Source of the DNA: Octopus bimaculoides
Lineage: Eukaryota
Direction: 5' to 3'
Assembly (NCBI RefSeq): GCF_001194135.2
Contig: NC_069002.1
Coordinates: forward strand, 36,346,608-36,386,021
Length of the DNA stretch: 39,414 bases
Below the pieces are notes generated by a model. That model was given only the letters and a program-made list of their open reading frames with translations. It had not been told where the DNA came from and did no database searches. Positions 7,706-39,414 of this stretch are shown piece after piece (position 1 is the first letter of the stretch; each line of letters begins with the position of its first letter). Made by a program: the position numbers and the translations under genes.

Positions 7706-7832
7706 TCATCCAATGGGAGCTATTCCGAGGTGTTCATTATAAACTTCATGACAAGGGCAGCTGGGTTTCAAAAGGCCGTTACATCTACATGACAAATTCT
7801 CACAGCAAAACAGTTCATTTCCTTTAGCTTCT
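7706..7832 (-). CDS. ICK-B terminal exon (paralogue of ICK-A last exon; encodes C3-C8 only)
   Basis: Phase-2 acceptor TATTTACAG/A is homologous to the ICK-A acceptor. Reads EAKGNELFCCENLSCRCNGLLKPSCPCHEVYNEHLGIAPIG*. The 3' UTR shares an identical 19-mer containing AATAAA with ICK-A. Confidence 0.7.
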
Positions 7833-15876: not shown

Positions 15877-18499
15877 GTGTGTGTCTGCGTGTGTGTGTGT
15901 GTATATGTGTGTGTGTGTTTGTGTTTGGTTATAGATTTATATAAGTACAGGTTAATTGGAAGTATCAATATATATTTAGTTACTACCAATAAAAACAGAT
16001 CGAAAATAAGCGTAGGTAAGACTAACTTATCATCAGTCTACGAATAAATATTTCGCCAACAGCTCTAACACAAATACAAATGTCATAGTTATAATCGTTC
16101 ACTCCCAAAGCTAGATGGCCGTTCATGGCTCTCATGGACCGACGTCCTTTGCTGAGTGTTGTTTTTTCGTCCATCAAGGTGTCTATTCACCCACTTCACT
16201 AGACTTGATTGGGGAAATTTTGGACACGAACAAATCTGAATTGAGTGAGGCAACCTACGTAAATGAAAGATGAGTCGGCGAAAGAGAAAAGCGAGTGGGA
16301 ATAAAGACTAGAAATAATACAGATGAGTGTTTCATTGTGTGTCCAGTATACGGCCGCAATTATGCACTGACTTTGGTCTCAGATCTCACCTGAATGTACA
16401 CAAATGAACAAAGTGCTAGGTTGGATTTTATCAACCATGATAGTCGACCAACAACAAAAAGTTATACTCGAAGTAATAAAAGTCTTACCTATTTAGCGAA
16501 CCATCGACAGGTTCCCGAGCACTGAGAGCAGCTTCATCATGGACTGATATATAAGATAAGCTTTAAGATTAGATTTCGGTTTACCAGCAGAATGTTTCAA
16601 AATATTCACATGAATAGTATAGCAACAATTTAGTAATTTATTTTTAAATATACTCTACCAGAAAATCTGAAGGGAAATTTGTGAAGCAGAGACTCATTAT
16701 CTTCTTTCATACATACATACATACATACATACATGCATACATACATACATAAGTACACTAACTACATACTGAGAAATAGATATATACATGCATACACTCA
16801 TTATAAACTAAGAGAATGAGAGAGGTGGAGATAGTGTCTTGGGTAAGCAATCGAGATAAAAACAGAAATAGAATTTTGCCGTTGCACCACTTTCTTGACT
16901 TTCATACAGGGAAACTAACCAATAATGAATTGTAAAAGGCGCTGTAAAAAAACAAAATAATCATCCAACTATATTCTAGAAGGATTAAACACGGAAAACT
17001 GGAGTATTCAGTGCCTCTAAGTCGTTTAGGTTACAAATGTATTGGTGAGACATCGAGGTAAAAGAGTGATAGAAATATTTATAGATAGATAGATAGATAG
17101 ATAGATAGATCCATTCATTCATTGTGTGAGATTGATAGATAGCATTTCTTATTGGGAAGAAAGTGACTTATTACAATTCAAAAGCTTTCTTTAGAGAAAT
17201 TTTTAAAAATAAAAACGGAGTTTCATCATTAGTTTTCCATCTGTAATCAACTTACCTATTTTAAAAGATGAAATTTGATGTCTTCGAAAATTGTAGCTTA
17301 ACTGCTTTAAATATCCTGTTGAAGAACACAGACAGACAGAAAGACAGGCAGACAGGGAAGCAGACAGACAGAAGAGTGCGAGAGAAGAGGCGAGTTGCAA
17401 ACAGAACCTGATTTTCTGTTACAGGTAGAAATATTTCGCAAAAATTATTATAGCGATTCCTTTGTAACTGAAAATAGTGAACTTCAGTAGAACATCATAT
17501 TTTACTCTAGCGCTATTTTCTTTACCTTCTTTTCGACCTATGTGCTCGGATGTGTGTGCGTGTGAAGAGTCTGAAGAAATATCATAGAAATCTGTTTCCA
17601 ACGCCCCTAACTTCTTTATTGCCCACAAGGGGCTAAACATAGAGGGAACAAACAAGGACAGACGAACGGATAAAGTCGATTAAATCGACCCCAGTGCGTA
17701 ACTGGTATTTAATTTATCGACGCCGAAAGGATGAATGGCAAAATCAACCTCGGCAGAATTTGAACTCAGAACGTAACGGCAGACGAAATACCGCCAAGCA
17801 TTTCGCCCGGCGCGCTACCGATTCTGCCAGCTCGTCGCCCTCATTTAAACAATAATTGTGAAAACAAGAATAAAAGTGAAAAATGAAACGAATATGATTT
17901 TGGCACTGGTCTTTGCCCGTCATTTGACTGAAAAGTTGTTGCTGTTGGCACTCCGTCGCTAACGACGTCGAGAGTTCCAGTTGATCCGATCAACGGAACA
18001 GCCTGCTCGTGAAATTAACGTGCAAGTGGCTGAGCACTCCACAGACACGTGTACCCTTAACGTAGTTCTCGAGGATATTCAGCGTGACACAGTGTGACAA
18101 GGCTAGCCCTTTGAATTACAGGTTCAACAGAAACAGGAAGTAAGAGTGAGAGAAAGTTGTGGTGGCAGAGTACAGCAGGGTTCGCCACCATCCCCTGCCG
18201 GAGCCTCGTGGAGCTTTAGGTGTTTTCGCTCAATAAACATTCACAACGCCCGGTCGGAGAATCGAAACCGCGATCCTATGACCGTGAGTCCGCTGCCCTA
18301 ACCACTGGGCCATTGCGCCTCCACTGACTGAAAAGTAAGCACAGAAAATAGAGACAATTCCATTATATCACTCTCCTTCTTCTCCTGCCAGTACCCCTTC
18401 TCAAGTTACAAGGTCCATGTAGTACTTACCTAACTTATACGTTAAGACGTTTGAAAGTAGCACACAGTACCAAAAGCAGAGAACAAGGAGTGTTTTCAT
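14721..18499 (-). CDS. ICK-A: secreted agatoxin-like (inhibitor cystine knot) peptide precursor, 4 coding exons, 117 aa
   Basis: Exons 18499-18430, 17570-17526, 16543-16489 and 14904-14721. All introns are GT-AG with compatible phases 1,1,2 (donors GTAAGT, GTAAAG, GTAAGA). Spliced product: MKTLLVLCFWYCVLLSNVLTYKL-DSSHAHTSEHIGRKE-VHDEAALSAREPVDGSLN-REAKRR/DIKCAIYKWTCTVKKTTIEYTCCEGMECRCNPFWKSNCRCYELTYEDIGINPPSG*. It has a hydrophobic signal peptide, a KRR site, C-x6-C-x10-CC-x4-CxC-x7-CxC, a terminal Gly, and AATAAA about 110 nt past the stop. Confidence 0.8.
15000..15595 (+). mobile_element. Tc1/mariner transposase relic in ICK-A intron 3
   Basis: Reads LWSPDSPD-L..MDYYV*G.VKKETNRYVHST...CIEAVIEVNGG, the C-terminal DDE/D motif WPPNSPDLNP.DY..WG, with frameshifts. 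Confidence 0.75.
17585..17843 (-). mobile_element. SINE family A copy
   Basis: Head GGCGACGAGCTGGCAGAATCGGTAGC...GAGTTCAAATTC. Other copies at about 1121-1220 (+), 12415-12620, 12930-13115, 26600-26820, 31640-31795, 33410-33580, 36810-36950 and 38349-38548 (+). Confidence 0.8.
17937..18324 (-). mobile_element. Full-length tRNA-derived SINE with 12-bp TSD, in ICK-A intron 1
   Basis: tRNA-like head GGAGGCGCAATGGCCCAGTGGTTAGG...GTTTCGATTC. TSD TGACTGAAAAGT at 17925-17936 and 18325-18336. Confidence 0.85.
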
Positions 18500-20807
18500 C
18501 ACGTCACCTGTTAATATACAAAGTCAACAATCAGAGATATTGATAGATGTATATGTATGATGCATTTGCTACGTTGCTAGAGTTCGCATAACCACAACGG
18601 GGAAAACATGGAGCTAAAATTTAAGTGTTTTATATTTTACTGTTCTGCTTGGCTGCGTCCAATAACTGGCGATGAAATATATATGAACGACATATTACTC
18701 TTTAGATAATCAAAATTGAGTCTTCCCTATAAAGAAGAAATATGTTCCGAACGAACAGATGCTACAATACTGTAATTTGCATAAGCACGACGTTGAAAAA
18801 TAGACATCGAGCAGTGAAAAACAAACAAAAGTGTCGCATATTTTTTTGGTTAAGTTCGGTTGCTTCCAATAAGCAAAACAAGACATGGATGAACATGTGT
18901 GTAAAATATATAACACTATAATCATGTGTAAATACAACGCACCGGAATCGAACTCAGAATCTTGTGACCGCAACACCCTAACCACAAGCCACGCTTTTTC
19001 ACATAAAGTATTTCTATATTATACTATGTAAATATGTAGAACTACATATAGATGAAAATAAAAATTGGTATATATATATATATATATNNNNNNNNNNNNN
19101 NNNNNNNNNNNNNNNNNNNNNNNNNNNNNNNNNNNNNNNNNNNNNNNNNNNNNNNNNNNNNNNNNNNNNNNNNNNNNNNNNNNNNNNNNNNNNNNNNNNN
19201 NNNNNNNNNNNNNNNNNNNNNNNNNNNNNNNNNNNNNNNNNNNNNNNNNNNNNNNNNNNNNNNNNNNNNNNNNNNNNNNNNNNNNNNNNNNNNNNNNNNN
19301 NNNNNNNNNNNNNNNNNNNNNNNNNNNNNNNNNNNNNNNNNNNNNNNNNNNNNNNNNNNNNNNNNNNNNNNNNNNNNNNNNNNNNNNNNNNNNNNNNNNN
19401 NNNNNNNNNNNNNNNNNNNNNNNNNNNNNNNNNNNNNNNNNNNNNNNNNNNNNNNNNNNNNNNNNNNNNNNNNNNNNNNNNNNNNNNNNNNNNNNNNNNN
19501 NNNNNNNNNNNNNNNNNNNNNNNNNGGGTTTCAATTTCCGTCTTCGAAATTCACTCACAAGTCTTTGGTGGGCCCAAGGCTATTGCAGAAGACACTTGGC
19601 CAAATGATATTGAACTCGGAACCGCGTGAGTGGTAAGTAAACTTCTTACCTCGCCCGCGCCTATTAATATATTGTAGATAACAAGGAGACTACGTAATGA
19701 ACAAATTTCAGTGTAAAGATAAATGTAAACTTCTCGACGTAAAATACACAAGGACCTATCATTAAATATTAGAACATAGAAAAAGAACCGATGTAATCGA
19801 CTTAACCCTTCCCCACGAAGTTGCTGCCCTTGTGCCAAACTTTGAAACCAACATGTGTTTTAAAGCTGTCACTTACTCTGTTGTATTTTTTGCTGAACCG
19901 CAAAACAGGGGAACTCCACAAACCAACACCAGTTGCCAAACGGTGTGGGGATAAAACACAAAGACAAAGGCGCAAATATATGCATTCGAGAATGGAAGTT
20001 AACGGGCTTTTATAGTGGATCACGACGTACGTTTCTGCACCCCGCATCAGCTTTATGTTGACGGGTTTATTAATTTTAATGATTTCTATGCATTTGAACA
20101 TTATCCAACAACAGCTGTCTGCGGTAGTTTTCAGTGAAGTACGCGATTTTTACTCAAATTACACCAAGCAAATATATATATATATATATCTGTAATTACA
20201 CTTTAAGCTTCCATACGGTTTCCAAATAGACACTCATACCTGCGTCTACACTGGCATTACTAACTTACACACAGAACCAAAAATTATAATTTATACCAGA
20301 CCTTTTTGTTGTATCCGTCCTTTTGAATCAAATTACGTTGTGTAAATCTGACTGCGTCTTCAGAATTCTTTTAAACAAGAATCAAATACGTTCATGTTAC
20401 GTCGACTGTCTGAAAATGACCCTCCCATTAAACCCCATTTAGTTCAACCGTTCCCAACTTTCTTTAAGTGTTACGACTTCTTTTTTTTTTTACAGTCAAC
20501 ACCATGTAGAGAGCCAGATGATTAATTACTTATTAGTTAATGAGAGCATTGTTTTTTTATTGTCATCGTACCTGTGTTAATTAGTAATTAAAAAGTCACT
20601 TTAATGTATAATCTTGTTTATGTTTTTAACGTGTATCTGCCAACTACGCAAGCTATTAAAATATGAGAAACGACAACATAATGGCCATCATTGAGTATAG
20701 ATTATTCGACAACCAGTCCTGTTGTTCTTCAGAAGTATATCATCAGGAATCAAGGTGACTATAGCCAGCATCATTTTACCTACGACAATCATGTTTTGTG
20801 CCATATT

Positions 20808-21409
20808 GGATCTTTTTTAAAACGGGGGCCACATTTTTCATTAATGTTTTACGTAGTGTTTTTGGTACCGAAAGACTTTCAAACTTCGTATACTTCTCTA
20901 TTTTGTGTTATAGAACAGAAAAATATTTTTGTATTCGAATTTGTTTCATGTAAAAAGTTGTCTTATTTCGATAATTTCAACCAATCACTGACGTCCATTC
21001 AGCCGATATACATTAAGTGCCGACTACATAAACAAACGATTCTTCGTTTTATTTGCTTTTTTCACTTTAAATTTGCTTTAACCCTAACCCTAACCCTAAC
21101 TCTAACCCTAACCCTAACCCTAACCCTAGGGTTAGGGTTAGGGTTAGAGTTAGGGTTAGGGTTAGGGTTAATTGTTTCAGAATCGTTTGTTTATGTAGTC
21201 GGCGCTTAATGTATATCGGCTGAATGGACGTCAGTGATTGGTTGAAATTACAGAAATACGACAACTTTAACATGGAATAATTTATGGATTTCTTTTTTTT
21301 TAAAGAAGACTAAGAGAAAAAGATGTTTTATATGACACATTCTACCAGTGTTCCAAGTTTCAAAGTGTTTCGTTAATGAAAAATGTGGCCCCCGTTTTAA
21401 AAAAGATCC
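20808..21409. mobile_element. 602-bp non-autonomous DNA transposon (MITE) with 37-bp perfect TIRs and 8-bp TSD
   Basis: TIR GGATCTTTTTTAAAACGGGGGCCACATTTTTCATTAA at both ends. TSD GCCATATT at 20800-20807 and 21410-21417. An internal inverted repeat of about 100 bp flanks a telomeric palindrome. GG termini with an 8-bp TSD fit Merlin; hAT and P also give 8-bp TSDs. Confidence 0.85.
21079..21170. repeat. Palindromic interstitial telomere-type repeat
   Basis: (TAACCC)3 TAACTC (TAACCC)4 TA (GGGTTA)3 GAGTTA (GGGTTA)3. Confidence 0.9.
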
Positions 21410-21559
21410 GCCATATTTATTTCTGTAATTTCCTTGTTTCGGTCATTAGACTGCATTAGTGTGTGGGCATGAAATTAATAAGTGTGTGTAATTACTTACA
21501 TATATGAGTGTAAGGGCGCTTTTGTGCGTGTGTGCGTATGTTTGTGTGCGTGTGTGTTT

Positions 21560-21602
<43 letters not shown>

Positions 21603-22929
21603 ACTGAGAGGGAGATAGAGAGGCTATCTGACGTATGCGTGTTTTGTAGGAGGGTGAAGGTGAGACGACCTAGATGGCAGTGTCAGGTTGGATGAAAATA
21701 TATAAATCTCATATAAAGTAGCAAAACCGTAATACTATAACAATTAGAAATATATTAATTATAATGTTAAATAAGGGCAATTAGAGGGTACTTAAAACCA
21801 TATACAAATACGAACTAAAAATTATAAATTCCTTTAAATATATATATATATATATTTACACACATATTTACACACATATTTACACACATATATACACACA
21901 TATACATACGTATATACATATATAAGTGTATTTTTATTCTTTTACTTATTTCAGTAATGTAGATTGCAGCCATGGTGGAGCACCGCCTTAAAGGGTTTTT
22001 AGTCGAAGCAATTGACCCCACATATACACACATGCCTTTATGTGTATGTGCATATAGACAGTTAATGATAAGGCCCAATTAATGAGGAAATATGAAGGCC
22101 GCCTTCCGATTGTGACTTCAAGACACGCAACAATGTCATTTTGCCATTCATCTCTCTTTGGTCTATAAAATATGTACAAATGAAGAAGTAGTTTGAGAGT
22201 CATCGATTAACCTTTCCACTCAACGCTGGTGGCTCTGTGTCTTCTGAAATTCGAAACAATAATTGGATGTGATATGATGAAGCTCTCTGACCATTGGTGT
22301 ATGATAGCTTCATCCAGTTCATATGAAATCGGAGTTACACATTTCATCTTGAGCGTAAGTAATGGCTCTGGTCTCAAATGGAGTATAACATGTTGGGGCA
22401 AGAATTTTGGTGCATGCCGCAGAGAAAGATCTTTTACCTTTTATTTGTTTCAGTCATTTGAATGCGGCCATGCTGGGGCACTTCCTTACATCGAGCGAAT
22501 CGACCCTAGGCCTTTTCATAAGTACTTATTCTAGCTTACTCATTTGTTTAATCGCTAATGTAGAATCTTGAAGATATTTTTAGACAGTTACTGAATACCG
22601 TCCCACATTTAGAGCAAAATCGACATGCATACATTTTTTGCTGGTATCTGACGTATACCTAGAATATACCTGAAGATCATCGATTCTTCGCCTAGATTTC
22701 TCTTGCCGAGATTAGTCACTGACATCTCTAATAGACAAAGAAAATAGTGAGACCGTTAATTAATAGAGATACGTAATATTATGCTCTGTCAGAAAGTGTT
22801 GTATTTGTAAAGATATCGGTTACATAATTTTCTGTGTGGGAATCATATGCCACATGTGTTTAGCATCAAACAATCATGTTTATTCAGGTGTGTGTTTGAT
22901 ATCAATGCAACATATTGACACAATATACA

Positions 22930-23082
22930 GTGAAATGTGAAGGAAAGATTGATTTGGGATATAGAAAATAGAGAAAATACTTTCGTTTGGGTACATTTCA
23001 CATACAACATTCCGTCAAATGGAAATTGACAAACCTCACATAATTGCTTGGGACATAGTTATAGAAGCCAGAGGCTTTTGAA
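22930..23082 (+). promoter_or_regulatory. Putative promoter and non-coding exon 1 of ICK-C
   Basis: Block conserved in the paralogues, with a TATA-like TATAGAAAA and a donor GAA/GTAAGA at 23083, about 290 nt before the signal exon. Confidence 0.5.
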
Positions 23083-23382
23083 GTAAGAACATTTCATTCA
23101 CAGTTAACAGAATCGAGAATATTTATGGACAAATGCTTCGAAGACATCATCATCACCTAAATTAAATATTTACATTAGTACTTTTGTTGGAATTAAATTT
23201 GCTGTATTACTAATTGTTTAAACGATAATGTTATAAAACTTGAATTTTCAGCGAAATGAAATTGGATAGAGAAAATATCATTGTTACCTAAATTTCAGCT
23301 GTCGACCTTTGCTTCTTTGTAAGAATAAAGCTTCCGTTTTTAATTACCTTATTTGTTATATTTCTTTATCAGCAGGTGCGTG

Positions 23383-25111
23383 ATGAAAGGCATCAGTGTC
23401 TTATTGTTTTGTGCATTCATTTCATACAGCTTCTCCGATGAACAAAGTAAGTATAATCAGAAACCTCTTTTACTTTATAGTCATCAGATATGTAGTGGGA
23501 GAAAAGGGGGAAAATAGAAATGTGGAAAGAAGAAAAATGAATAACGTTATCTCAGCGGTCTTTCGTATGTACCCCATTTATATGTAATTACAGCTTTCAA
23601 ATAGATAACTCTATTTATGTACATTACTCATTGACCAAATGTTCAGAATTACGATTCTTCAATATAATATAACACATTTAATTAACGATGGCTGGCTAAT
23701 TCTTTATGTACAAATCGGGAAGAATTCTAGTGAAGTGCTGCCATCTGTTACTCCCATATAAGATCAGAACGTAAGCACGGACGAAATGACACTAAGCATA
23801 TCGTCCGTCGAAGTAATGATTCTACCAGTTCGCCACTGCCTTTAGGACTCTTAATTATTAAAATCATTACAGTATAGACTCAGCAAGTGCTATATATAAT
23901 GTTTCATGTGTTTGTTTTGTTTTGCTTTGTTGTCCTTCCATATTTTATGACTGCGTTGGTTTTTATCTCTTTTACGTATTACAAATACCCGTCACTACAA
24001 TGATGAGCAATGTGAAGTGTCTTTGTGAGGGAATATGAGTTTGAGTCGTCATGGTTCTGCATCTTACTTCAGATGATGTTATTATAAATACATCATCCTC
24101 TATTTTATGAATTATCTATTGAGTGCTACTTGAGGATTTTGGGTATTTCTACACAAAATTTTGGTAAATGGATATTTAATTCTTCAATATGTATTTTAAT
24201 ATCTCTTTCAGATGTCACTTCCGTCCATCGACAGACAACAGCTAATGTAAGTTTGAATAACATGACTCATAGGTAAGAACTACATATCTACATCTGTTAT
24301 CGAAGTAATAATAGACTAACACCCTCAGTAAGGTTTCATGGCTTATGCCGTAGTAGAGAGGTCATTAGTATTGGGGCAATCCTATTCTTAAGACTGTTTC
24401 CAAATTATAGTTTTTGCGCAAAAGAAAATGTGAAACGGAAAATATGATTGAAAAAAAAATCTTCATGAGTAAAAGTTGAATATTTGTTTATACTTTGCCT
24501 ACAAAGTAATTTAACAGTTTATTCAGATATAGGCGCAAGTATGGCTGCCTGGTTAAGAAGTTCACTTCGCAACGAAAAAGTGTGAGGGTTTAATCCCTGA
24601 ACATGTGTCTTCTGCTATACCCTCAGCCCGATCTATACTACCTCAATGGATGTGATTGAATGGAATTCTATAATATATATCTACTAGGGAGACCCGTGGA
24701 AATTCCACAGAATTGAAAAAATAATTTACGAAAGAAAAGACGATTTGCATTTTTATAGCATTCATAGTTAAGCGTTCTTTAAATATCCTTGACGTTCGTC
24801 TACATTCATTTCCTCCCGTCTCCGTCGGTGTTGTCTTTTCCTCTTTTTATCATATTTTCTTGCTGTCCCTCTCTGATCTGTGTTCGATATCTGTGCATCC
24901 TTTCTCGGGCAGCGTGTTTCCTCTGTATAAACTTTTATAAACAAATATCAAATTTTAAGCGAGCAGACGATAAATAATTGCACTTATGCGTTAAACGATG
25001 GTCACTTTGAAAAAAAAAATTCGTTCAATAAAACAAAAATTCGTTCAATAAAAAAATAATACTTTTCATTATCAACACACCACCATCACCGCCGCCACTG
25101 TCGCTATCTGC

Positions 25112-25197
<86 letters not shown>

Positions 25198-25322
25198 ATA
25201 ACTACCTCACCTGTCCATCCCTCTCTTTCTACCTTTCCCTTCAGCTAACTTTTTAATCACGTAATAAGTATTCCTTCCCCACCCCACCGCACATCGTTAA
25301 CACGTCTCTTTCTCTCTCTCTC

Positions 25323-25359
<37 letters not shown>

Positions 25360-25679
25360 CGTCTAATCCTTTCCCTTGAAAATTCCTGCCCTTCTCCCTA
25401 AACGAGAAACCATAATTTAATGACTTATTTCCTACCATATTCTGTATTTACAGTGGCAAGTGTAAGAGAACCCTATGTTCAATGTATGAGTGTAACCGAT
25501 ATTTGACAGACAAGAATTGCTGCCCAGGTGTGAATTGTCATTGTAATTTACCACAACGGATATGCATGTGTAGTTCACAAAATATCATCTATGGGACTCA
25601 TAACAGTATACTCCAAAGTATAATTGCTCTTCCCATTTTTCTTGTAAATTTACATCTTATTGACGTTCTGTTCTTGTGA
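23383..25679 (+). CDS. ICK-C: knottin precursor with hydrophobic C-terminal (GPI-like) tail, 3 coding exons, 116 aa
   Basis: Exons 23383-23446, 24212-24272 and 25454-25679, with phases 1 and 2 and donors GTAAGT and GTAAGA. Product: MKGISVLLFCAFISYSFSDEQ-NVTSVHRQTTANVSLNNMTH-SGKCKR/TLCSMYECNRYLTDKNCCPGVNCHCNLPQRICMCSSQNIIYGTHNSILQSIIALPIFLVNLHLIDVLFL*. Confidence 0.8.
25104..25355 (+). repeat. (CT)n tracts in the ICK-C last intron
   Basis: Seen directly. Confidence 0.95.
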
Positions 25680-25854
25680 ATCTTGTGGATAAATTTCATG
25701 CATCAGATTCTTTTTATACAAGGAGAAAAATCGATGAAATCACGAAGACAAAATATTTGTTTTAGGTAAGAATTTAGAACTGTAATACATACAGAAACCA
25801 AAGGAAACAGGCAAATATCAAAAGTATATTCAACTACAAAAACATCAACTAGTG

Positions 25855-25866
25855 CTGTTGCTGCTG

Positions 25867-25930
<64 letters not shown>
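25855..25930 (+). repeat. (CTA)n microsatellite 3' of ICK-C
   Basis: Seen directly; its homologue is the (TAG)n tract 3' of ICK-D. Confidence 0.95.
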
Positions 25931-27551
25931 ATCTTCAATTTTAAAACTAACTCAATTATCAAATCCTATATCAAAAGAATACTACGAATAAATTTCATGA
26001 AACAAAGTGAAATATTAAATATTAACGAGCAGAAGTTTGATTTTGTAATTTATCCCTGAAAGAAATTCACGGATGTTGTACCAAAAACTGAAAAGGTAAA
26101 GAAGAGAGAATGAGCAAAACATAACCTACCATTATGACATTTCTAAAACCCCTAAATTAGCAGACATGGTTCTTGCATTGTATTACTCATATTTTTTTTA
26201 ATAAAACGTTGTTTGTGCAAGCAATTAAAACTTCTTTCTTGTCTAGTGTTAACTAATTCAATTTTCAAAGTAAATATTTGATATAATTCTTCTAGGCACA
26301 AATTGCATTTTTCGTTCCCTATTTTCTAAACTAATAACGGGGAGAATTACTCCTTGAACAATGGCTGAAGAGATCGTACAGATTATGCATAAATCCCTGC
26401 GTATAAATATGAAGAAATTTGCAATTGATACAATCGAAATACGTGTCGGACAATTACTATAAATAAACCAAACAGAAAGTCTGAATGTTCAAATTCTTTG
26501 TTTCCCTTATTATTAGAGAGTGTGGGGGTGAGTTTGTGTGTGTGTGTGTGTGTGTGAATTTGCCTGTCTGTATGTTAGTGTGTTTGTATACACGTATTTA
26601 CGCATAATTGTAAAGAGTGATCTAGCGGAACGTTTCGCACACCGGTGCTGCTTAACGGCACATCATCCGTCTTTATGTTCAGAGTTCAAACGCTGCCCAG
26701 GTCGACATTACCTTTCATCACTCTGGGGTTGATAAAATAAGTACCAGTTGAGCACGGCGCTTGATATAATCGATTTACTCAATCACCGAAACCTTCTGGC
26801 CTTGTGCCCAAAATATGAAACACACACACACACGTGTGTGTCTGTGTGTGTAAGCGTCTGTATGCCAGTAGGTATGTCTTTTACATATATGCATATGAGT
26901 GTATGTATAGATAGAGATAGAGAAGACTAAGAGATAGGTGAATAAGAATATGAATTGGCACGCGTATGCATGTTGTTAAAATATTAGCTTCACAATCCCA
27001 CACTTTTGTCAGAAATACGGGAGGGGCACAAGCGGAAATCTTACTGAGTCGTCCAGTATAGCTTAATTTTTGTATTAATTCCATAATGCTTGCAATGGAC
27101 TTAATGTATACGAGACGTTATACTTCATGCTTATCCTCTTCCTATATTTCAAAATAACCTGAAAAGCCCGAGTCAGTACAACTGTTGTAGGTCCAAGTTA
27201 GACTACTTTGTTTATCTACCTTATCGGAACTCTTATGCTTTTCTAACACAATATTCCATACTAGACTTTTATTTGATTTATTATAGTGTCGGAAACTAAA
27301 TTAATATAGTGCAGAAGAGTCCATATAATTTTCATCTGTGGCTAACTTGTCTCTACTTTGACGTTTCTCTTTCAGGTGGTATTATATGTACTCGTATCAT
27401 TCTTCCTCAGAAATCTGAAAAGTAGGCGGTTTATTGCAAGTGCTGTTGCGTGAAGTGTCTTTCATTTCTTAATCAATACTGAAGATTTAACTTGGCCAAA
27501 CACCACACTGATGCTTGTATCTTTCTATGAGTCAATCACATGAACTTTTAT

Positions 27552-27843
27552 ATATTTTAGTCATTAGACTGCGGCAAATCTGAAGCATCATCTTGAAGAA
27601 GTTTTGTGCCAAAATGTCGAATGAATTTTAAATCTTGGTTATCATTTATCGGAAGGTGATGATGAATTGTTAAGTTACGGGGACGTAAACACACCGATTA
27701 CGTTTGTGAAACGCTGGGCAGGGGAAACAAACACAGACACAAAAGACATATATGTATATACATGCATGCATGCATACGTACATACATACATACATGAATA
27801 CCTACATACATGCATACATACATATATACATAGTGTGTATGTA

Positions 27844-27893
<50 letters not shown>

Positions 27894-28040
27894 GGGCTTC
27901 TTTCAGTATTTCCTCTACCAAATCTATTCTCACCATGGTTTGATTTACCCGTGGCTAAATACTTGTCCAAAATGCCAAGCAGTTGGACTGAACTCGAACT
28001 CGGACCATGTGGTTAGGAGGCAAACCTCTTACCACACACC
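27552..28040 (-). mobile_element. SINE family B copy with internal microsatellite
   Basis: Reverse complement of the 13391-14440 family, with an (AT)n/(CATA)n core. Confidence 0.7.
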
Positions 28041-29336
28041 CACTTTGATCTTCGGATATCTTTAAAATATTTCTTTTAAATCACTGCCAGTACAGAAATC
28101 TGATTTACTTGAATTGTGTCCCACCTATAATTTATCTCACCAGATAAAATCAAATGCAGGATGGTGATATCTGTGTTATATATGACACCGCAACGAAATT
28201 TCTATCCTTTTTTTTTTTTTATCTTTTGATAGTGATATTTCCTATTTACTTCCATCTAGAAATCAATGGAAATTGACTTCTATTCCCTTCAAACTTTGCT
28301 TTCGTGACCTGGACATCAACGTTTTCAAAGTGATCTATTTTCTATTATATTTTAGACAGATTCAGCGCTGAGTTGTAGAAACAGACATATTGTTATAGCT
28401 AATATTCTGATCAATACCACACATTTGTTGTTTAGTTATTTGACCTTGTCCACTTGAACATGTCCTTTAGTGGCTTACAATATGCGCATCTCTGATAATG
28501 AGCAGGAGTAGTGAGTGAGTATCAATGCCATATGATGAAAGGGGATTTTTGGAGTGTGAATCAATGTAAGAAAAACAAAGTCTGAAGGAAATATTAATCC
28601 TTTTTCATAGTTTCTAGAGAAAAGCAAAGAGGAAACAGAAGTTGTTACCCAAGGACAAAAATAGTGCTACACACTGTTACGATTTATGGACGTTAATGAA
28701 AGAAGCCAGATTTTCTATGTATAGCGAAAAGTGGGGAATGCTGGAACCATATTTATCGTTTTTTTGTTTCCTTGCTTTTCTTTTCTTATCTCTCTATTTT
28801 CCTGTTTCTTTTTTCTTAAATGTTATAATGTAGAACTTGCCGAATATTCTGGTTTTTACAATATTTATAGTGTGACACTCCAATGTAAATCTTACCATCC
28901 ATATCCGAAACTTAAAAGCAAGAACCACAGCGAAGAACGAAGCACAAAGAATTCGTTACGTTCAATGACGTAAAAACAAATAGGACAGCGAAGAACAAAG
29001 CACTAAATATTTGTAATAGTTTGATAAATTAATTTAATTGGAATTTCATTAAAATTTCACGGATTAATAGCATAAATATATGAGATATTTGATGCGATTG
29101 TCGTACAAAATTAAGGGTTGTTAGGAAACTCATGTTTGTTGGTTATTGTTTACATATTTTCACTTCTTTTACCATTTCCGCTCTTGGTCAACATACGTGA
29201 ATCTCTTTCCAGGATAAATTACAAAAATCAAACTTCTGCTCGTTAATATTTTATATTTCACAGTCTTTCTTGATGTTTATTCAAAGTGTTATATTGTTAT
29301 AGGATTTGATAGTTGAGTTAATTTCAAAAATTGAAA

Positions 29337-29338
<2 letters not shown>

Positions 29339-29413
<75 letters not shown>

Positions 29414-29443
29414 TCAGCAGCAGCAGCAGTAGTAGTAGTAGTG

Positions 29444-29480
<37 letters not shown>

Positions 29481-29800
29481 NNNNNNNNNNNNNNNNNNNN
29501 NNNNNNNNNNNNNNNNNNNNNNNNNNNNNNNNNNNNNNNNNNNNNNNNNNNNNNNNNNNNNNNNNNNNNNNNNNNNNNNNNNNNNNNNNNNNNNNNNNNN
29601 NNNNNNNNNNNNNNNNNNNNNNNNNNNNNNNNNNNNNNNNNNNNNNNNNNNNNNNNNNNNNNNNNNNNNNNNNNNNNNNNNNNNNNNNNNNNNNNNNNNN
29701 NNNNNNNNNNNNNNNNNNNNNNNNNNNNNNNNNNNNNNNNNNAGGAGGAGGAGGATGGGGAGGAGGTAAAGTAGCAGCAGCAGCAGCATCAACAGCAACA
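29339..29800 (+). repeat. (TAG)n/(CAG)n compound microsatellite 3' of ICK-D (with gap)
   Basis: Seen directly; flank 29281-29340 is reverse-complement homologous to 25930-25990. Confidence 0.9.
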
Positions 29801-29956
29801 ACACTTAATTGATATTTTTGTAGTCGAGTGTGTTTTGCTGTGTTTGGATCCTTTTTTGTTTTTTTGGTCTGTCTTCGTGATCTCACCGATTTTCTCCTTG
29901 TATAAAAACCAATCTAACGTATGACATTTATCCACGAGATTCACCAGAGCAGAACG

Positions 29957-32511
29957 TTAATAAAATGGTAAATTTACAATAGAAATGAGAAAAACTATTA
30001 CAGTTTGGAGTATACTGTTGTTAGCCACCTGGGTGATATTTTGAGAATTACAAAGACAGATACGGAAACGTTTACATCGACATCTGGTACCTGGGCAGCA
30101 AGCATATTGTGGTGTGTATGAGCTTCTGTCACAGTAAAGTTCGTTACAGCGCCCATGTCTCTTAATCTTCTTACTGTAAATACAGAATATGATAGGAAAC
30201 AGAATATATTATTAAATTAAGGTGTCTCGTCGAGGGAGAAGGCAAAAAATATTGGTTTTTAAAATAAAATATATTAGATATATATAAGGATCTCTTCTAG
30301 GGACCCTATTATCGATGTCTTCAACAATCTGAGTATGCCATAAGGTTCCATGAGGTTTCTAGACATGAGTTCTACTCACGTGTCAAGTTTCATCAAAATC
30401 GATAAAACGATGTAGGAGGAGTTAGCTAACAAATCCACAAACACACCCACAGATAGAACTTCCCACCTATGTAGTAGATTATATATATTCGAAACGTTTG
30501 TCCGTAAATAATTCTCCATTCTGTTTACTGAGAATGAAATGTTCTTACTTCAAGGATATCTGGCTTGTATAACTATGATTTTTATTTCTGTCCCAAACAA
30601 TTCGCATTTGACGGAACGCTATATTTGAAATGTACACAGTCAAAAGTATTTTCTCTATTTTCTATAACCAAAATCAGTCTTTCCTTCACATTTCAATGTG
30701 CATTGTGTATACATGTTGCACTGTTACCTGGATAAGCATAACCGTCTACTGCTAAACACATGTGTCATATGATCCTCACACAGAAAATCATGAAATCGTC
30801 ATCTTTACAAATATAGAACGTTCTGAAAGAGCATAATTTTACGCATCTGTTTTAATTGATGACTTCTCTCCTTTATCTCTTAGTGATTTCAGCTACTAAT
30901 CTCGGCATGGAAGAACTCGAAAAAGAATCGATGAACAGGTACTCCAGGTATTCGTCTCATACCAGAAGAAATTAATGCATGGGTAAATGATACATTTCAG
31001 GGCTCAGGACAGGCCACAGTGGAGTGCTGCTTTCACATCTGGGACGATGCTGTTCCTATATACACAACTGTCTTAGAACCGCATCCAGAGAAAGAGTATT
31101 TGACTTATCGGAATAAAATTATTCACAGATGTGCTCCAGCTTCATCCCCACAAGCATGTTCTTTCCTTCCTCCGTCTTTTCTGGCGCTACTAAACGTAAA
31201 ATGGCGTCTGACTCTGAATTCGCTTCCACCCAGGCGTTCTCATCTTATTCATCTTTCTTCTTTTCATCATTCTATTTGTGTCCAAACCTCAGGCCCAGCA
31301 GTAATTCCTACACCCAGTCCTTCCTTCCCAGGATATCAACTTCATGGAACTTTCTCCCTGTTCATACCTTTTCCGTAAGTGTTCACTTACAAAGTTTCAA
31401 GATGAAAGTGATGACAAAAATTTTGTAGGCAAAATATAAAAAAATATTATTTAATTTTTACTTATGAAAATAATTTTCTCTTCGATAAATCTCGCTTCAT
31501 ATCTTCCCCTTTCCGAGTTTCTGTTATGCAGAAACTAAAATTTAGAAACAGTCTCAGAATTTGAATTTGCCAATACGAATAACTTTTCTATCATAGACTC
31601 AAGGCCTGAAACGTTGATGGAGGGCGCTACTCCCTTACATAAGATCCTAGTTCTCAACCAGTAATTATTTCATCGACCCAGAAATGATGCAAGATGCAGT
31701 CAACATAGGCGAAATTTCAACCCAAAACAAAGCCGGAAGTAGTGACACAAAGTATTTTATCCAGAATGTTAATGATTCTGCCAGCTTACCGCCTGGGCAA
31801 TATTAAGTTAATTACATAATTATAAGAGATACAGATATGTAGTTCTTACCTNNNNNNNNNNNNNNNNNNNNNNNNNNNNNNNNNNNNNNNNNNNNNNNNN
31901 NNNNNNNNNNNNNNNNNNNNNNNNNNNNNNNNNNNNNNNNNNNNNNNNNNNNNNNNNNNNNNNNNNNNNNNNNNNNNNNNNNNNNNNNNNNNNNNNNNNN
32001 NNNNNNNNNNNNNNNNNNNNNNNNNNNNNNNNNNNNNNNNNNNNNNNNNNNNNNNNNNNNNNNNNNNNNNNNNNNNNNNNNNNNNNNNNNNNNNNNNNNN
32101 NNNNNNNNNNNNNNNNNNNNNNNNNNNNNNNNNNNNNNNNNNNNNNNNNNNNNNNNNNNNNNNNNNNNNNNNNNNNNNNNNNNNNNNNNNNNNNNNNNNN
32201 NNNNNNNNNNTATAAAAGATTAGTCAGTCATTTTGATAATTAAATGTTACATATTATATTGAAGAATCTTAATTCCGAATATCTGACCTATGTGTAGAGT
32301 TATTTATTTGAAGGTTGTAATTACATATAAATGGGGTTACGTACGAAAGACCGTTCAGGTAACGTTATTCATTTTTCTTCTGCCCCCCTTTTCTCCCACT
32401 ACATATCTGATGACTATAAAGTAAAAGAGGTTTCTGATTATACTTACTTTGTTCATCGGAGAAGCTGTATGAAATGAATGCACAAAACAATAAGACACTG
32501 ATGCTTTTCAT
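29957..32511 (-). CDS. ICK-D: knottin precursor with hydrophobic tail; middle exon lies in an assembly gap
   Basis: Signal exon 32511-32448 reads MKSISVLLFCAFISYSFSDEQ (63/64 nt identical to ICK-C). The donor AG/GTAAGAACTACATATCT at 31851-31833, matching the ICK-C pro-exon donor, abuts the gap 31852-32210. Last exon 30173-29957 reads KKIKR/HGRCNELYCDRSSYTPQYACCPGTRCRCKRFRICLCNSQNITQVANNSILQTVIVFLISIVNLPFY*. Confidence 0.7.
30490..30890 (-). promoter_or_regulatory. Orphan copy of the ICK promoter and exon 1 inside the last intron of ICK-D
   Basis: Homologous to about 22730-23140 and retains the donor GAA/GTAAGA at 30548. No signal exon follows it. Confidence 0.5.
30895..31380 (+). mobile_element. 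CR1-type LINE 3' fragment in the ICK-D intron
   Basis: Across frameshifts: RAQDRP.VECCFHIWD...LD.RIQRKSI.LIG...SYTQSFLPRISTSWNFLP, the typical CR1 ORF2 C-terminus. Confidence 0.75.
31852..32210. other. Assembly gap (N run) expected to contain the ICK-D propeptide exon
   Basis: N run. Other gaps: 3325-3456, 10151-10342, 13576-14170, 19088-19525, 29481-29742, 34330-34339, 36177-36242. Confidence 0.95.
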
Positions 32512-33030: not shown

Positions 33031-34297
33031 TCTACTAGTTTCATATTTCCTCATTAACTGATCCCTGTTATCAACTGTCTATATGCACATACACGGAATC
33101 CTTTTATGTAAAAAAAAAAGTAACAGTAAGACTGAAAACGTAATGTATAGACGTAAATTTACATCTGAAGGAAATGAATTCTTTTACAGTAGTGTGACAT
33201 CTCTAATTCTCTAGATCATTCAGTAATAAAAAAATAAAAGTTTCCAAAGAAGTCTTGGTAAATTAATCTGGTCTATTAAAGACAGAAACAAAGATTATCC
33301 TATCAATTAAAAATTGATAGGAGACGTCAAACTTTTGGGTGAAAACACAACAATGTCTATATGTTGTTTTTTTATATGCCAACATATATATTCTTTTTTT
33401 CTTTCTATTCTAGGTACAAGGTCCGAAATTTTGGGGGAGAGGGCCAGTCGATTAGATTGACTCCAGTACGCAACTGGTACTTAATTTGTCGGAATTTGAA
33501 CTCATACCGTAAATATAGACGAAATACCGCTAAGCATTTCGTCCGGTGTGCTACCGTTTCTACTAGTTCGCCGCCTTATGCGAACATGTATATTGAGACT
33601 AGAAAATCGGTGCATATTCCAAATTGTTGTTTAGGAACAAGTTATTCCTACTCCAGCAGACATATTGTCAAAGACATTAAATTATCATTTAAACATTTAG
33701 TAATATAACTAATTACAACAATGGTTATAAGTACTAACGCAAATTTATAATTTACGCCGATATAATGTTTTAGAATCATTTTTAATTATTGTCTTTCGAT
33801 AAATTGGGAAAATGAGAACATTTTTCCAGAACTTATGACAAATATAAAGCTGTTGTAGTCAACATTAATATTTCCATTTGTTTCTTAACCAAAAAACCAA
33901 AACTAGAATAGCTATAGTTTATCCCAAAAGTAAAGATTAAAACTATGCATATTCACCAAGTACAAGCGCTGAATTGTAAAGCGAAAATTTGTAAATCCTT
34001 AAGTTTTTTTGAAATCTCTCTGTTTGAGGTTCTTCGGTTGTACACATGAACACAGGCAACAAAAAACGAAGCTTATAAACATATATTCTACCTCTATAAG
34101 ACATCATCATTACCATAACAATCTGTACATTGTTATTACTAATTTATATACAGCTACAATGAATGATTTGAATGTTACATACTTGTTATACTCAAACGGT
34201 AAAGTTCAAATTAGATGATGGTATTTATATATATAGTCTGTGTGCACTAGCTTTCTTATTCTTATCTCATTCTCCACTTGCTATGTATATATATATA

Positions 34298-36108: not shown

Positions 36109-37869
36109 TTATCGCTATTTCCCCCACAACACAAACACCGGCAGAAAAACAAACTTACGCGCGCGCACGCACACACNNNNNNNNNNNNNNNNNNNNNNNN
36201 NNNNNNNNNNNNNNNNNNNNNNNNNNNNNNNNNNNNNNNNNNATATATATATATATATATATATATACAGAGAGAGAGAGATACATATATTTCAAATAGA
36301 CCTACATATATTTCGACTGCATCGGTTAGTAAACGTTGTCGGTCCACTTTCTTTCGACAAGCAAATCGACCCTAAGCCCGTTCTCTATCGTTCTCATTTG
36401 CTAAATCTCCAAACTATGGCGATACCTGACACCCGCGTTTGGAGCCAACCACAGACGGAAATCACACGCCCACATATGTTTGTGTGTGTGTGTAATTTAT
36501 TAATGAGAGAGAGACGGAATATGGAAGAGACGAGGATCTCTATTGATCACTAGAAACGTTTCGACCCATCTAGCATCGATCCCTGGCGTATTCATTGGTG
36601 TAGTTGTATCTCCACAGGTGATTTTAATAAGTATCTCATTGAGATAATCTCCGTTTCGCAAGATGTCTTCTCGGCTTTCGTATATAGATGTGGCAAATTA
36701 AGGTATACATCTTCATTCTTATTGAACATCTATTGAGCAAATCACAGATACAATAAGAAATACATACTGAATGCAGTGAAAAAAAGTATTAGGTATCTAA
36801 TTACATCGACACCTGTCCTCAACTGGTACTTATTTTATCAACTGGGAAATGATGAACGGCAGCTGATATCGGCGGAATTTGAACTCAGAATGTGAGGACG
36901 GACGAAATGCCACTGACCATTTTGATCAGCGCGTAACCGATGCTGCCGGATCGCAGGGAAGGAATAATAAAACAAACCAACTGACACAACATACATTAAT
37001 CATTAGCAGCACGAAGAGACACACCAACCACAGTCCTGTTTATTTACTTATCACCGGTCAACATTATTTGTTATGATAACTTCTTTTATTCCTCTTTCAG
37101 TTTACTGGTTTTAGTCATTAGACTGCGGCCATGCTAGGGTGCCACCCTGAAGAAATTCAGTCGAATGAATCAACACCAGTACTTTTTTTTAAAGCCTGGC
37201 ACTTAGTGTATCGTTCACTTTTGCCAAACTGATAAGTTATGGGAGTCTAGAGTTTTTCTCTCTTACAAACAAGGATCGGCTTTCACAGAAGTTAATCAGA
37301 ACGAAAGTAAGTACTTAAGCAATCTTGTTTCGCGGCCAGTGGTTTTTCATATGTTGCTCTGATATGTGTGAGAAAACAGAATCGACATTTAACCGTGATA
37401 TATGGAAATAATTCTACATTATTTCAAGAAAAATGAGGAGACGATTTTTGCATGGGATTGATTCTTTCATAGGAGTATGCGCGGTATTTCATATGTGAAG
37501 CTAGTTGCACAATATAAGGTAGTTATAAATAAAATGTCATTGACCCTGTGCCTTATGGATTAGGAATGACCTGGATTTAAGCAACAATTTGGATTTTCAC
37601 AGCGACTTTTAGGAATCAGTATATGTTGGCATGTGATAAACAACATTTGTGTTATAATCTCAAATTTTGACATCTCCGAAGGGGAACATTGGCATAAGTG
37701 AGGACATAAATTCTGATATAGTTTGAAATGACGTTTTTTTCTCATTACTAAATCACATATCTGTCGAACTACATAACTTAGTAAATACTGAATCACATCG
37801 TATAAATCATGCTCTTGATATATGTGTGTGCGTGTGTACGTATTTATGTGTGTGTATTTGTGTGCATGT

Positions 37870-37950
<81 letters not shown>

Positions 37951-38348
37951 TGTGAAGAAAAGATAGAAACAATAAAGTGTGAAAATTGAGAGAGAAGAAA
38001 GCAAAAGCTGGAATAACGAAGGGTTGAAGCTGTTCAGTAAGTTACTAACAACATACAAACATCATCAACCAGCTTGAATATTGCACAAGAGAAAGTTAGA
38101 GAGTGTTTTATATAAATACCGTTCTTAATATAACAAGTATGTAGCATTTAAATTATTCATTATGGCTGTATGTAAATTAGTGATAACAATATAAAGAGTA
38201 TGTTATGGTAATGATGATGGTGGTAGTGGTAGAGCTTAATTTGTTTGTTGCCGGTTTGCATGTGTACAGTTCAAGAACCGCAAAGAGAATAGGCGGAATG
38301 TTTTACAAATTTCCACTTTATATCTCATCGGTTGTATTTGGAAAATGT

Positions 38349-38548
38349 GAGGCGGTGAGCTTGCAGAATCGCTAGCACGCCGGGCAAAACGCTTCGCGGT
38401 ATTTCATCCGCCGCTACGTTCTGAGTTCAAATTCCGACCAAAGTCGACTTTGCCCATTATCATTTTGGGTTCGATAAATTAAGTACCAGTTGAGTACAGA
38501 TGTGGTCGACTGTCCCCCTCCCTGCAAAATCCAGGCCTTATGCCTATA
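38349..38548 (+). mobile_element. SINE family A copy upstream of ICK-E
   Basis: GGCGGTGAGCTTGCAGAATCGCTAGC...GAGTTCAAATTC...GATAAATTAAGTACCAGTTG. Confidence 0.75.
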
Positions 38549-39046: not shown

Positions 39047-39371
39047 GTAAGGACATTTCATTCATAATTAACAGAATCGAGAATATTTACGGACAAATTC
39101 TTCGAAGACATCATCTTCACCTCAATTAAATATTTACATTAGTACTTTTGTTGGAATTAAATTTGCATTAGAACTATTGGTGCAATTAAATTAGCTATAT
39201 TCTTTAGTATTTAAATGATAATGCTGTAAAGCTCGGATTTTCGGTGAAATAAATTTGGACAGCGAAAAGATGTTAGCTAAATTTCAGCCGTAGACCTTTG
39301 CTTCTTTGTAGGAATAAAGCTTCCGTTTCTAATGACTCCCGTTGTTACATTTCTATATCATTAGGTGCGTG

Positions 39372-39414
39372 ATGAAAAGCATTAGTGTCTTATTGTTTTG
39401 TGCATTCATTTCAT
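39372..39414 (+). CDS. ICK-E: signal-peptide exon, truncated by the window end
   Basis: Acceptor TTAG/GTGCGTG then ATG; reads MKSISVLLFCAFIS. Near-identical to the ICK-D signal exon and intron 1. Confidence 0.7.
   Translation, partial: MKSISVLLFCAFIS

Follow-up and report, generated by a model that had tools for sequence, protein, structure and literature searches.

Divergent cysteine core and gene-converted 5′ ends in octopus paralogues related to the precursors of CCWamide and of agatoxin-like peptides

Two genes of Octopus bimaculoides, here called C and D, carry in their last exon a cysteine core that is a sharply bounded hot spot of divergence, changing between orthologues at about four times the rate of the flanking non-coding DNA. 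Gene conversion, and not exon-specific constraint, keeps C, D and a further gene, E, similar at their 5′ ends. Judged from intron phases, cysteine frame and profile matches, C and D belong to an octopus-lineage expansion of an old protostome neuropeptide family, its prepropeptides known as CCWamide in spiralians and agatoxin-like peptide (ALP) in arthropods (Thiel et al. 2021, PMC8557429; Sturm et al. 2016). We consider it probable that such an expansion, gene conversion at the 5′ ends and diversifying pressure on the hypervariable loops of a knottin core jointly account for the data.

The window, the whole stretch of 39,414 nt that was analysed, corresponds to O. bimaculoides chromosome CM046622.1:36346608-36386021 and is 100% identical to GCA_001194135.2. 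C (+ strand) and D (- strand) are neighbouring paralogues in convergent orientation; C is isoform X3 of LOC128250541 and D is unannotated. The shared gene build consists of a signal exon (phase 1), a pro exon of about 20 codons (phase 2) and a last exon, which encodes a dibasic KR site, a core of 34-36 residues with the pattern C-C-CC-CxC-CxC, and then a tail some 30 residues long. The features of gene C are:

20663-20754, + strand: first exon of gene C (LOC128250541), located by tblastn of P0001; the junction between 20754 and 23373 has GT..AG
23373-23446, + strand: signal exon; ATG at 23383, 64 coding nt (MKGISVLLFCAFISYSFSDEQ), ends in phase 1, donor GTAAGT
24212-24272, + strand: pro exon, 61 nt (NVTSVHRQTTANVSLNNMTH), preceded by a phase-1 and followed by a phase-2 intron
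25454-25679, + strand: mature exon; stop codon 25677-25679
25455-25469, + strand: GKCKR
25470-25571, + strand: eight-cysteine core
25572-25676, + strand: hydrophobic tail

The first exon, coding (MRNDN...) according to NCBI, is probably 5′ UTR. The pro exon is absent from the model of the sequence-only reading; it restores the frame and reproduces the NCBI XP model P0001, with the spliced 64+61+226 nt giving the P0001 translation from MKGIS on. The two-exon gene implied earlier, signal joined directly to mature, is wrong: the phase-1 end of the signal exon does not fit the phase-2 start of the mature exon, and splicing the two directly breaks the frame and gives nothing rich in Cys. The mature domains themselves are encoded as described, TLCSMYEC...RICMC at 25470-25571 (+ strand) and GRCNELYC...RICLC at 30050-30154 (- strand). 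In-frame indels set them apart in two loops, Cys2-Cys3 and Cys6-Cys7, and their charges differ (core net charge +1 in C and +5 in D), again in agreement with that reading. The features of gene D are:

32448-32511, - strand: signal exon, coding part (MKSISVLLFCAFISYSFSDEQ), ends in phase 1
31852-32210: assembly gap in intron 1, which hides the pro exon of D
31850-31851, - strand: last 2 nt of the pro exon; the donor GTAAGA is readable just below the gap
29957-30173, - strand: mature exon; stop codon 29957-29959
30158-30172, - strand: KKIKR
30050-30157, - strand: eight-cysteine core
29960-30049, - strand: tail
29481-29742: assembly gap in the 3′ flank, adjoining an (AGT)n trinucleotide microsatellite

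The mature exon of D is in no annotated protein of the searched database; its O. sinensis orthologue was assigned by position (L004:5429-5639). The sequence on either side of the gap at 31852-32210, whose true length is about 0.5 kb, is collinear with the O. sinensis orthologue as well as with paralogue C. Readable sequence resumes past it with AG followed by GTAAGAAC, the end of the pro exon and its donor, so the pro exon is unread and the frame of D stays a predicted one. The gap at 29481-29742 lies at least 215 nt past the stop codon and leaves the coding sequence unaffected. Further members of the cluster are:

18430-18499, - strand: gene B (LOC128250542) signal exon (MKTLLVLCFWYCVLLSNVLTYKL)
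16489-16543, - strand: gene B pro exon, 55 nt, ends in AG
14721-14904, - strand: gene B mature exon, with EAKRR, the eight-cysteine core, then YELTYEDIGINPPSG
7706-7832, - strand: exon A, alternative 3′-terminal exon in isoform X2 of gene B, with six Cys only
39363-39414, + strand: gene E signal exon, incomplete because of a gap and the end of the window

Gene B is a conserved CCWamide-like paralogue. Gene E lies head-to-head with D, and its mature exon is outside the window, at the window-equivalent positions 42301-42540.

An exhaustive HMM search of 1.84 billion representatives returned 12 relatives only, 11 from Octopus spp. and one a chiton protein named 'toxin Tbo-IT2-like'. Aligned by hhalign with 11 published CCWamides, the C/D-type group scores a probability of 95.5 (E=1.4e-8) and the B-type group 99.5 (E=3.8e-22), and the eight Cys columns align as well. 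Three coding exons, signal first and mature last, are common to gene C (64 + 61 + 226 nt) and CCWamide/ALP, as is a basic cleavage site before the eight-cysteine peptide; in C and D the last exon has KR as its residues 4-5, and most paralogues retain it. The introns of C and B follow phase 1 then phase 2, the same as in the CCWamide gene of Lottia, which has a 20-residue pro exon between them (PMC8557429). At the phase-2 junction, B has a split Arg codon (AG closing the pro exon, A opening the next), in line with the Arg or Lys of CCWamide/ALP; C and D have a split Ser codon there (AG/T). The C/D type also differs in its lack of the CxCN(L/F)W..NCRC motif; the Cys6-Cys7 loop is KRFRI in D (a single aromatic, Phe) and NLPQRI in C (aromatic-free), and NPFWKSN in B. 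An amidated C-terminal aromatic residue is absent from C and D, which have the hydrophobic tail in its place, and the C-termini of B and A are Gly preceded by non-aromatic residues. Canonical CCWamide genes are conserved and occur in one or a few copies, whereas the octopus genes form clusters with hypervariable loops.

The cysteine spacing is identical to that of the spider Toxin_9 knottins (mu/omega/U8-agatoxins, Tbo-IT2, purotoxin). The best PDB matches are omega-agatoxin IVA/IVB, purotoxin-1 and Tbo-IT2, all weak (E 0.12 or worse). In the Pfam Toxin_9 search (PF02819, gathering cut-off 21.3 bits), C and D have no match; B is borderline (21.1 for the exon alone, 15.7 for the full model) and the relatives P0015 (25.1), P0016 (22.4) and P0014 (22.2) pass. 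The octopus genes further differ from the spider toxins in having introns and a pro exon, like the neuropeptide lineage.

The cores of D and its O. sinensis orthologue are 41% different, the flanks 11% (Fisher p=3e-10); taken apart, the adjacent intron differs by 7.5% and the 3′ flank by 12.6%. In the control gene B, core divergence is 0.09 compared with 0.13-0.15 for the flanks. The eight Cys columns are invariant in 10/10 paralogues and orthologues, all with the open reading frame and splice sites kept. A codon model with 7-10 paralogues gives a family-wide loop omega of 3.4-5.5, point estimates that have an upward bias (the median for scrambled loops is 1.7-2.2) and that come from 30-33 codons only, with uncertain loop alignments and evident recombination among paralogues. 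The likelihood-ratio test for omega above 1 is significant (2ΔlnL 22-32), exceeding the maximum of 8.3 in 100 simulations at omega=1 and the 9.7-17.0 of the scrambled controls. The proposal of a fast core under diversifying selection is partly supported: the excess over the flanks is real, and the family-wide omega, with the bias noted, is above 1. On the refuting criterion that the sequence-only reading set itself, mature-region dN/dS at or below 1, it fails for the C-D pair, in which this ratio is 0.6-1.0 and saturated. The C-D-E trio gives an omega of 1.01, and the D-E loops are likewise saturated, with omega about 1. For the core of D versus the O. sinensis copy, dN/dS comes to 1.9 without reaching significance.

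Synonymous sites of the core are raised too (D versus O. sinensis, pS 0.39 compared with 0.11 in the flanks, p=9e-4, although NG86 overstates pS where codons differ at two or three positions), so selection on point mutations alone is insufficient for the pattern. This synonymous excess agrees equally well with selection and with an explanation in which hypervariability is mainly mutational or recombinational, with short paralogue-templated conversions (cassette exchange) or targeted hypermutation replacing the core of about 110 nt and selection preserving the Cys frame only. The sharp boundaries of the hot spot on both sides and the gene conversion demonstrably active in the cluster speak for this explanation. 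However, none of the 10 known cores are closely alike, no donor was found for the core of D or of its O. sinensis orthologue, and in the closest pair, F1-F2, pN is well above pS (0.43 and 0.13). We regard a mainly mutational or recombinational origin as possible but doubtful.

The signal exons at 23383-23446 (+ strand) and 32448-32511 (- strand) differ at 1/64 nt, a match that was not equalled in 100 shuffles, and the exon-adjacent intron and tails align at about 80-85%, both as first noticed from the window. The identity runs past the exon, with 0/62 differences in the next intron bases:

23390-23508, + strand: 119-nt run without differences between C and D (57 exon nt, 62 intron nt); D copy at 32386-32504, - strand

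We read this run as a recent gene-conversion tract between the gene copies; C-D divergence in its flanks is 0.14-0.19. Between species, the signal exon differs from the O. sinensis copy, which has lost the ATG, at 7/63 positions (0.11), the same as the intron (0.11), and divergence over the tract region is 0.11-0.13. D and E are 94-98% identical in their 5′ regions and 68% in their mature-exon regions. The view that purifying selection had 'frozen' the signal exon has to be given up, since the identity includes intron and the exon changes between species at the neutral rate.

These observations also bear on whether C and D are venom toxin genes of the conotoxin kind, in which purifying selection would freeze the signal exon and diversifying selection on point mutations would drive the loops. 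The core does evolve faster than its neutral flanks, omega exceeds 1 across the family, the scaffold is common to spider agatoxins, and CCWamide/ALP peptides were recruited into spider venom (PMC8557429, PMC13311285). The cluster resembles conotoxin superfamilies in its conserved 5′ part, its fixed Cys frame with hypervariable loops, the rise of both nonsynonymous and synonymous divergence in the mature region and its tandem clustered paralogues. Against this, the 5′ similarity in octopus comes from conversion tracts spanning intron and upstream DNA and is gone between species, the C-D omega is 1 or less, core pS is raised as well, and secreted toxins do not typically end in a conserved hydrophobic tail. 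The octopus genes have no sequence relationship to conotoxins, and the literature searched has no report of such peptides in cephalopod venom. This combination of venom role and conotoxin-style selection appears, as a whole, unlikely, and the label 'toxin' for C and D is an analogy only, their resemblances placing them in the CCWamide/agatoxin-like neuropeptide family.

That C and/or D are decaying duplicates under relaxed constraint, or pseudogenes with loops diverging by neutral drift, is very improbable: D is unannotated with its pro exon unread, the C-D omega is about 1 and the O. sinensis orthologue has damaged-looking 5′ exons, but neutral decay cannot outrun the flanking non-coding rate 4-fold, and the eight Cys, splice sites and open frame persist in 10/10 copies and KR in most.

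In the explanation that we favour, an expanded CCWamide/ALP family with converted 5′ ends and loops under diversifying pressure, the precursor would enter the secretory pathway, a proprotein convertase would cut it after KR, and the core would fold as a four-disulfide knottin. Changing binding partners, whether in prey or in the octopus itself, would then put the diversifying pressure on the loops. The raised synonymous divergence leaves room for a contribution from paralogue-templated exchange or local hypermutation.

The tail that follows the core comprises 30-35 residues, of which the last 15 or so are hydrophobic. Its coding frame is free of stops, of which the two other frames contain 26 and 9, and in nine members it shows a Kyte-Doolittle value of 1.9-2.5 in frame 0 with 0-2 charges; the hydrophobicity is a property of the coding frame only. 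Omega for the tail is about 0.9-1.1, so constraint on its sequence is weak. A low-confidence AF2 model (pLDDT 60) predicts a helix for the tail and a hairpin at residues 27-31/36-40. Foldseek with this model gave knottins as best matches, none significant (E above 4). The tail most likely holds the domain at a membrane or is a C-terminal propeptide that is removed.

A more specific proposal, to which we assign a low probability, is that the C/D subtype is a membrane-tethered knottin, with the tail acting either as the signal for GPI attachment or as a minimal transmembrane anchor and the hypervariable domain displayed on the octopus cell surface. The GPI-anchored 'prototoxins' Lynx1/Ly6 offer a functional analogy only, a disulfide-rich domain of toxin fold followed by a near-chargeless C-terminal hydrophobic segment; they have a three-finger fold, whereas a knottin is predicted in octopus, where the tethering is purely inferred. 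If tethered, the agatoxin-like domain would be a cis-acting modulator of ion channels or receptors, or a recognition tag, and alternative last exons on one set of signal and pro exons would provide extra diversity.

Genes C (plus strand, LOC128250541) and D (minus strand, unannotated), the paired eight-cysteine peptide genes, are convergent, tail to tail, in a window of 36% GC with eight N gaps. The window matches Octopus bimaculoides GCA_001194135.2, chromosome CM046622.1:36346608-36386021, at 100% identity. Both exons that the sequence-only reading had given each gene are present; it missed a third coding exon, the middle (pro) exon, which for D is hidden in an assembly gap. The elements found are as follows.

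23383-23446, plus strand: C signal exon, coding part, 64 nt from the ATG
24212-24272: C pro exon, 61 nt, bounded by cag and GTAAGA (NCBI model and sequence)
25470-25571, plus strand: C core (eight-cysteine) peptide string
30050-30154, minus strand: D core peptide string
32448-32511, minus strand: D signal exon, coding part, 1 base different from C
from 39363, running off the window: signal exon of E, the third gene

The signal exon ends in phase 1 and the mature exon opens in phase 2 (…TTTACAG/T), so a direct join is out of frame in both C and D and gives no cysteine-rich product; splicing of 64+61+226 nt in C yields a 116-residue precursor. Below the gap at 31852-32210, D reads AG followed by GTAAGAACTACATATCT, a match to the end of the C pro exon with its donor, which places the D pro exon inside this gap. 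The two sides of the gap align collinearly with C as well as with the O. sinensis orthologue, in which the equivalent interval measures ~485 nt. The gap at 29481-29742 falls in a trinucleotide microsatellite of the D 3' flank, at least 215 nt past the stop. The sole NCBI models matched by a query with the D protein were isoforms X3 and X2 of LOC128250541; C is X3 (P0001, exact match), and the D mature exon is absent from every annotated protein in the searched database. The first exons of C (20663-20754, plus strand) and of the divergently transcribed gene B (19875-19985, minus strand; LOC128250542, a conserved CCWamide-like paralogue) are 680 bp apart. Both are probably 5'UTR, since translation from the upstream ATGs of the NCBI models (MHIFAP…, MRNDN…) would place the signal peptides in the interior of the precursors. 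The first intron of C contains a telomere-like, head-to-head palindrome, (CCCTAA)8(TTAGGG)7, at 21079-21170, the centre of an inverted repeat (20808-21409) with further arms at 20808-20844 with 21373-21409 and 20938-21000 with 21222-21283. A dispersed repeat of ~150 nt, SINE- or MITE-like (73-82% identity), lies in introns and spacers of the cluster (17675-17873, 12470-12615, 38343-38491, 36800-36953, 1090-1221, 33492-33575, and 23764-23832).

The signal exons of C and D are one base apart, as had been read from the sequence (1/64; no chance match in 100 shuffles), but their likeness stems from gene conversion and not from constraint. Between C and D, divergence is 0.14-0.19 upstream, 1/64 in the signal exon, 0/62 over intron positions 1-62, and 0.15-0.16 beyond, with an identity run of 119 nt (23390-23508). 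Between D and its O. sinensis orthologue, the corresponding values are 0.12, 0.11 (7/63), 0.11, and 0.14. Identity that spans into the intron and is lost between species indicates that the local copies evolve in concert through gene conversion, and not that purifying selection acts on the exon specifically. G0 and G1, paired genes of another cluster, have an identity tract of their own, and the signal peptide of B is quite different. Over 440 nt upstream plus the signal exon, D and E share 94-98% identity, which drops to 68% around the mature exons; the two as mis-scaffolded haplotypes are thereby rejected.

The core of C and D differs in the manner described from the sequence, with indels in the inter-cysteine loops and a contrast in charge (C +1, D +5). 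By the Nei-Gojobori method, the pair shows pN 0.46 and pS 0.59 in the core (ω 0.60), pN 0.63 and pS 0.63 in the loops without cysteines (ratio about 1, saturated), and pN 0.22 and pS 0.17 in the tail, the ~30 residues after Cys8; the neighbouring DNA diverges by 0.21 (adjacent intron) and 0.22 (3' flank). Maximum likelihood gives ω 0.70 for the pair (2ΔlnL 0.12) and 1.01 for the C-D-E trio. Since dN/dS above 1 is beyond what the C/D pair by itself can show, further last exons of the C/D type were brought in: five lying in another cluster, at 29.2 Mb (L001 and L002), then E and LOC128250536 (L005). The closest pair, F1 and F2, has loop pN 0.43 against pS 0.13 (Fisher p=0.019), with flanks at 0.06-0.13. 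A one-ratio codon model gives loop ω of 4.7-5.5 (7 sequences) and 3.4-3.9 (10 sequences), with 2ΔlnL of 22-32 under three codon-frequency models; the highest 2ΔlnL in 100 simulations under ω=1 was 8.3. Scrambled loop codons gave median ω 1.7-2.2 and a highest 2ΔlnL of 9.7-17.0, so the point estimates are inflated; the likelihood test nevertheless stands. Diversification of the loops is thus supported across the family and, as shown below, by the orthologue, but not by the C/D pair itself. A mosaic history, in which the 3' half of C groups with G1 of the other cluster and not with D, was unsupported (bootstrap 0.69, noisy alignment).

Around the B orthologue in O. sinensis (L004), the sequence runs collinear with the minus strand of the window, and the locus holds one C/D-type gene, at the position of D. 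The 5.3 kb with the C signal, pro, and mature exons (20807-26164) has no counterpart at L004 8841-9639, whereas the C first exon does have one (L004 9694-9771); the C block is either an inverted duplication in the O. bimaculoides lineage or an O. sinensis loss or assembly collapse. D differs from its orthologue by 0.075 in the intron (80 nt), 0.126 in the 3' flank, 0.07-0.13 in wider collinear blocks, 0.154 in the tail, and 0.407 plus 6 gap columns in the core (108 nt). The proposed comparison of mature region with neighbouring DNA therefore places the core above its flanks (Fisher p=3e-10). In the control gene B, core pN and pS are 0.088 and 0.098, the flanks lie at 0.13-0.15, and the tail is strongly conserved (ω 0.07). 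The core is thus a genuine hot spot with sharp boundaries, and one particular to the C/D type. In the O. sinensis gene, the 5' exons look damaged: the signal exon (L004 1505-1567) is 63 nt with a 1-nt deletion and AAA in place of ATG, and the pro exon (L004 2230-2289) is 60 nt. Its mature exon is undamaged, keeps all 8 cysteines, and is 100% identical to the O. vulgaris model P0009. The damaged 5' end could reflect pseudogenisation, another 5' exon in use, or assembly errors.

Selection on point mutations does not fully account for the core. Between D and its orthologue, the loops show pN 0.56 and pS 0.39 (ω 1.9, not significant), and this pS exceeds the flank rate (p=9e-4). With synonymous sites raised, templated micro-conversion or local hypermutation may contribute to the divergence; a donor core was not found among the ten copies available. 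The E core as donor of the O. sinensis core is rejected (0.60 difference), and neutral decay is rejected by a core rate above the flank rate.

Relatives were sought with a profile in 5.8 billion proteins and, exhaustively, with HMMER in 1.84 billion representatives. Only about a dozen were found, in O. bimaculoides, O. sinensis, and O. vulgaris, save one chiton protein named 'toxin Tbo-IT2-like' by NCBI. Pfam gave no match for C or D; the conserved members P0014, P0015, and P0016 pass Toxin_9 and B is borderline. A sequence search of the PDB returned weak knottin matches (E≥0.12), and Foldseek against the PDB with an AF2 model of the C last exon (pLDDT 60) returned nothing significant. The scaffold is that of the spiralian CCWamides, the agatoxin-like peptides (ALP) of arthropods (PMC8557429). 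In Lottia CCWamide (supplement of PMC8557429), a phase-1 intron separates the signal exon from a 20-residue pro exon, and a phase-2 intron precedes the mature exon; the same phases are found here, with the split codon Ser in C and D and Arg in B. In profile-profile comparison with 11 published CCWamides, the B-type group matches over the whole precursor (E=3.8e-22) and nine C/D-type sequences match over the cysteine domain (E=1.4e-8). Splice pattern and profile matches together identify C and D as divergent CCWamide/ALP members. Unlike CCWamide, they lack the CxCN(L/F)W..NCRC motif, with one aromatic left in that loop in D and none in C, and have lost the amidated aromatic C-terminus. C and D are best labelled a fast-evolving offshoot, specific to octopuses, of the CCWamide/agatoxin-like peptide family; the searchable literature yielded no description of this offshoot, and 'toxin' as a word for C and D is unsupported. 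A canonical-looking O. bimaculoides CCWamide, …CSKWQMACTTSSKRPDARCCSGLVCKCNIWGANCRCDDTLG, is encoded outside the window (P0015, LOC106867751; P0013/P0014, LOC128250511/510) and is identical in O. vulgaris. This gene is probably the conserved ancestral type, the source of the fast-evolving copies.

All nine C/D-type proteins carry ~30 residues beyond Cys8 with the pattern SSQN.IH…ILQTVI.FLIF.VNLPSY, a 15-residue Kyte-Doolittle maximum of 1.9-2.5, and 0-2 charged residues; the tails of B, A (the alternative last exon of B), and the conserved members are short and polar. In seven sequences, the coding frame of the tail has 0 stops versus 26 and 9 in the other two, and the hydrophobic reading is limited to the coding frame, C excepted. 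AF2 predicts a helix at low confidence. Tail ω is about 0.9-1.1 family-wide (0.5 between orthologues), so it is the general character of the tail, more than its sequence, that is constrained. The tail would serve either to anchor the product in the membrane, by GPI or a transmembrane segment, or as a C-terminal propeptide. A GT directly follows the conserved ILQ(T/S) codons in 8 of 10 paralogues (C 25617, D 30004, L005 31806); in E, this GTAAGC is the NCBI donor to a further exon (…DDRRYG) replacing the hydrophobic tail, which may thus be optional in some copies.

Two more last exons on the minus strand carry the C/D acceptor motif TTCTGTATTTACAG, and the NCBI model LOC128250542 uses one or the other behind a single signal and a single pro exon.

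14721-14904, minus strand: B last exon
7706-7832, minus strand: A last exon, without Cys1-2
18430-18499: B signal exon (LOC128250542)
16489-16543: B pro exon (LOC128250542)
42301-43119, window-equivalent (L005 31639-32457): E exons used by the LOC128250541 model

In LOC128250541, the last exon is C's own or that of E, 17 kb off, across the opposite-strand gene D. F1 and F2 form a tandem of last exons, 1 kb apart, with a single signal exon (L001 21904-22120 and 22871-23087). The joining of one signal and pro set to several last exons may reflect genuine combinatorial splicing or an artefact of the models.

The locus splits 'toxin-style evolution' into two processes that are usually lumped: conversion by which the 5' exons evolve in concert, and a sharply bounded hot spot in the core with synonymous sites raised as well. 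Here, with a chromosome-level genome, the old question of hypermutation versus selection can be tested. Among protostome peptide families, CCWamide/ALP is an orphan one, and its sole known offshoot is the agatoxin-type venom peptides of spiders. Octopuses are a second lineage expanding this scaffold, with clustered, fast-diversifying genes so far annotated as 'uncharacterized'. Expression in the salivary gland would make the products the first cephalopod knottin venom peptides and a parallel case of this hormone being weaponised; neural or tethered products would instead form a new class of rapidly evolving endogenous ligands.
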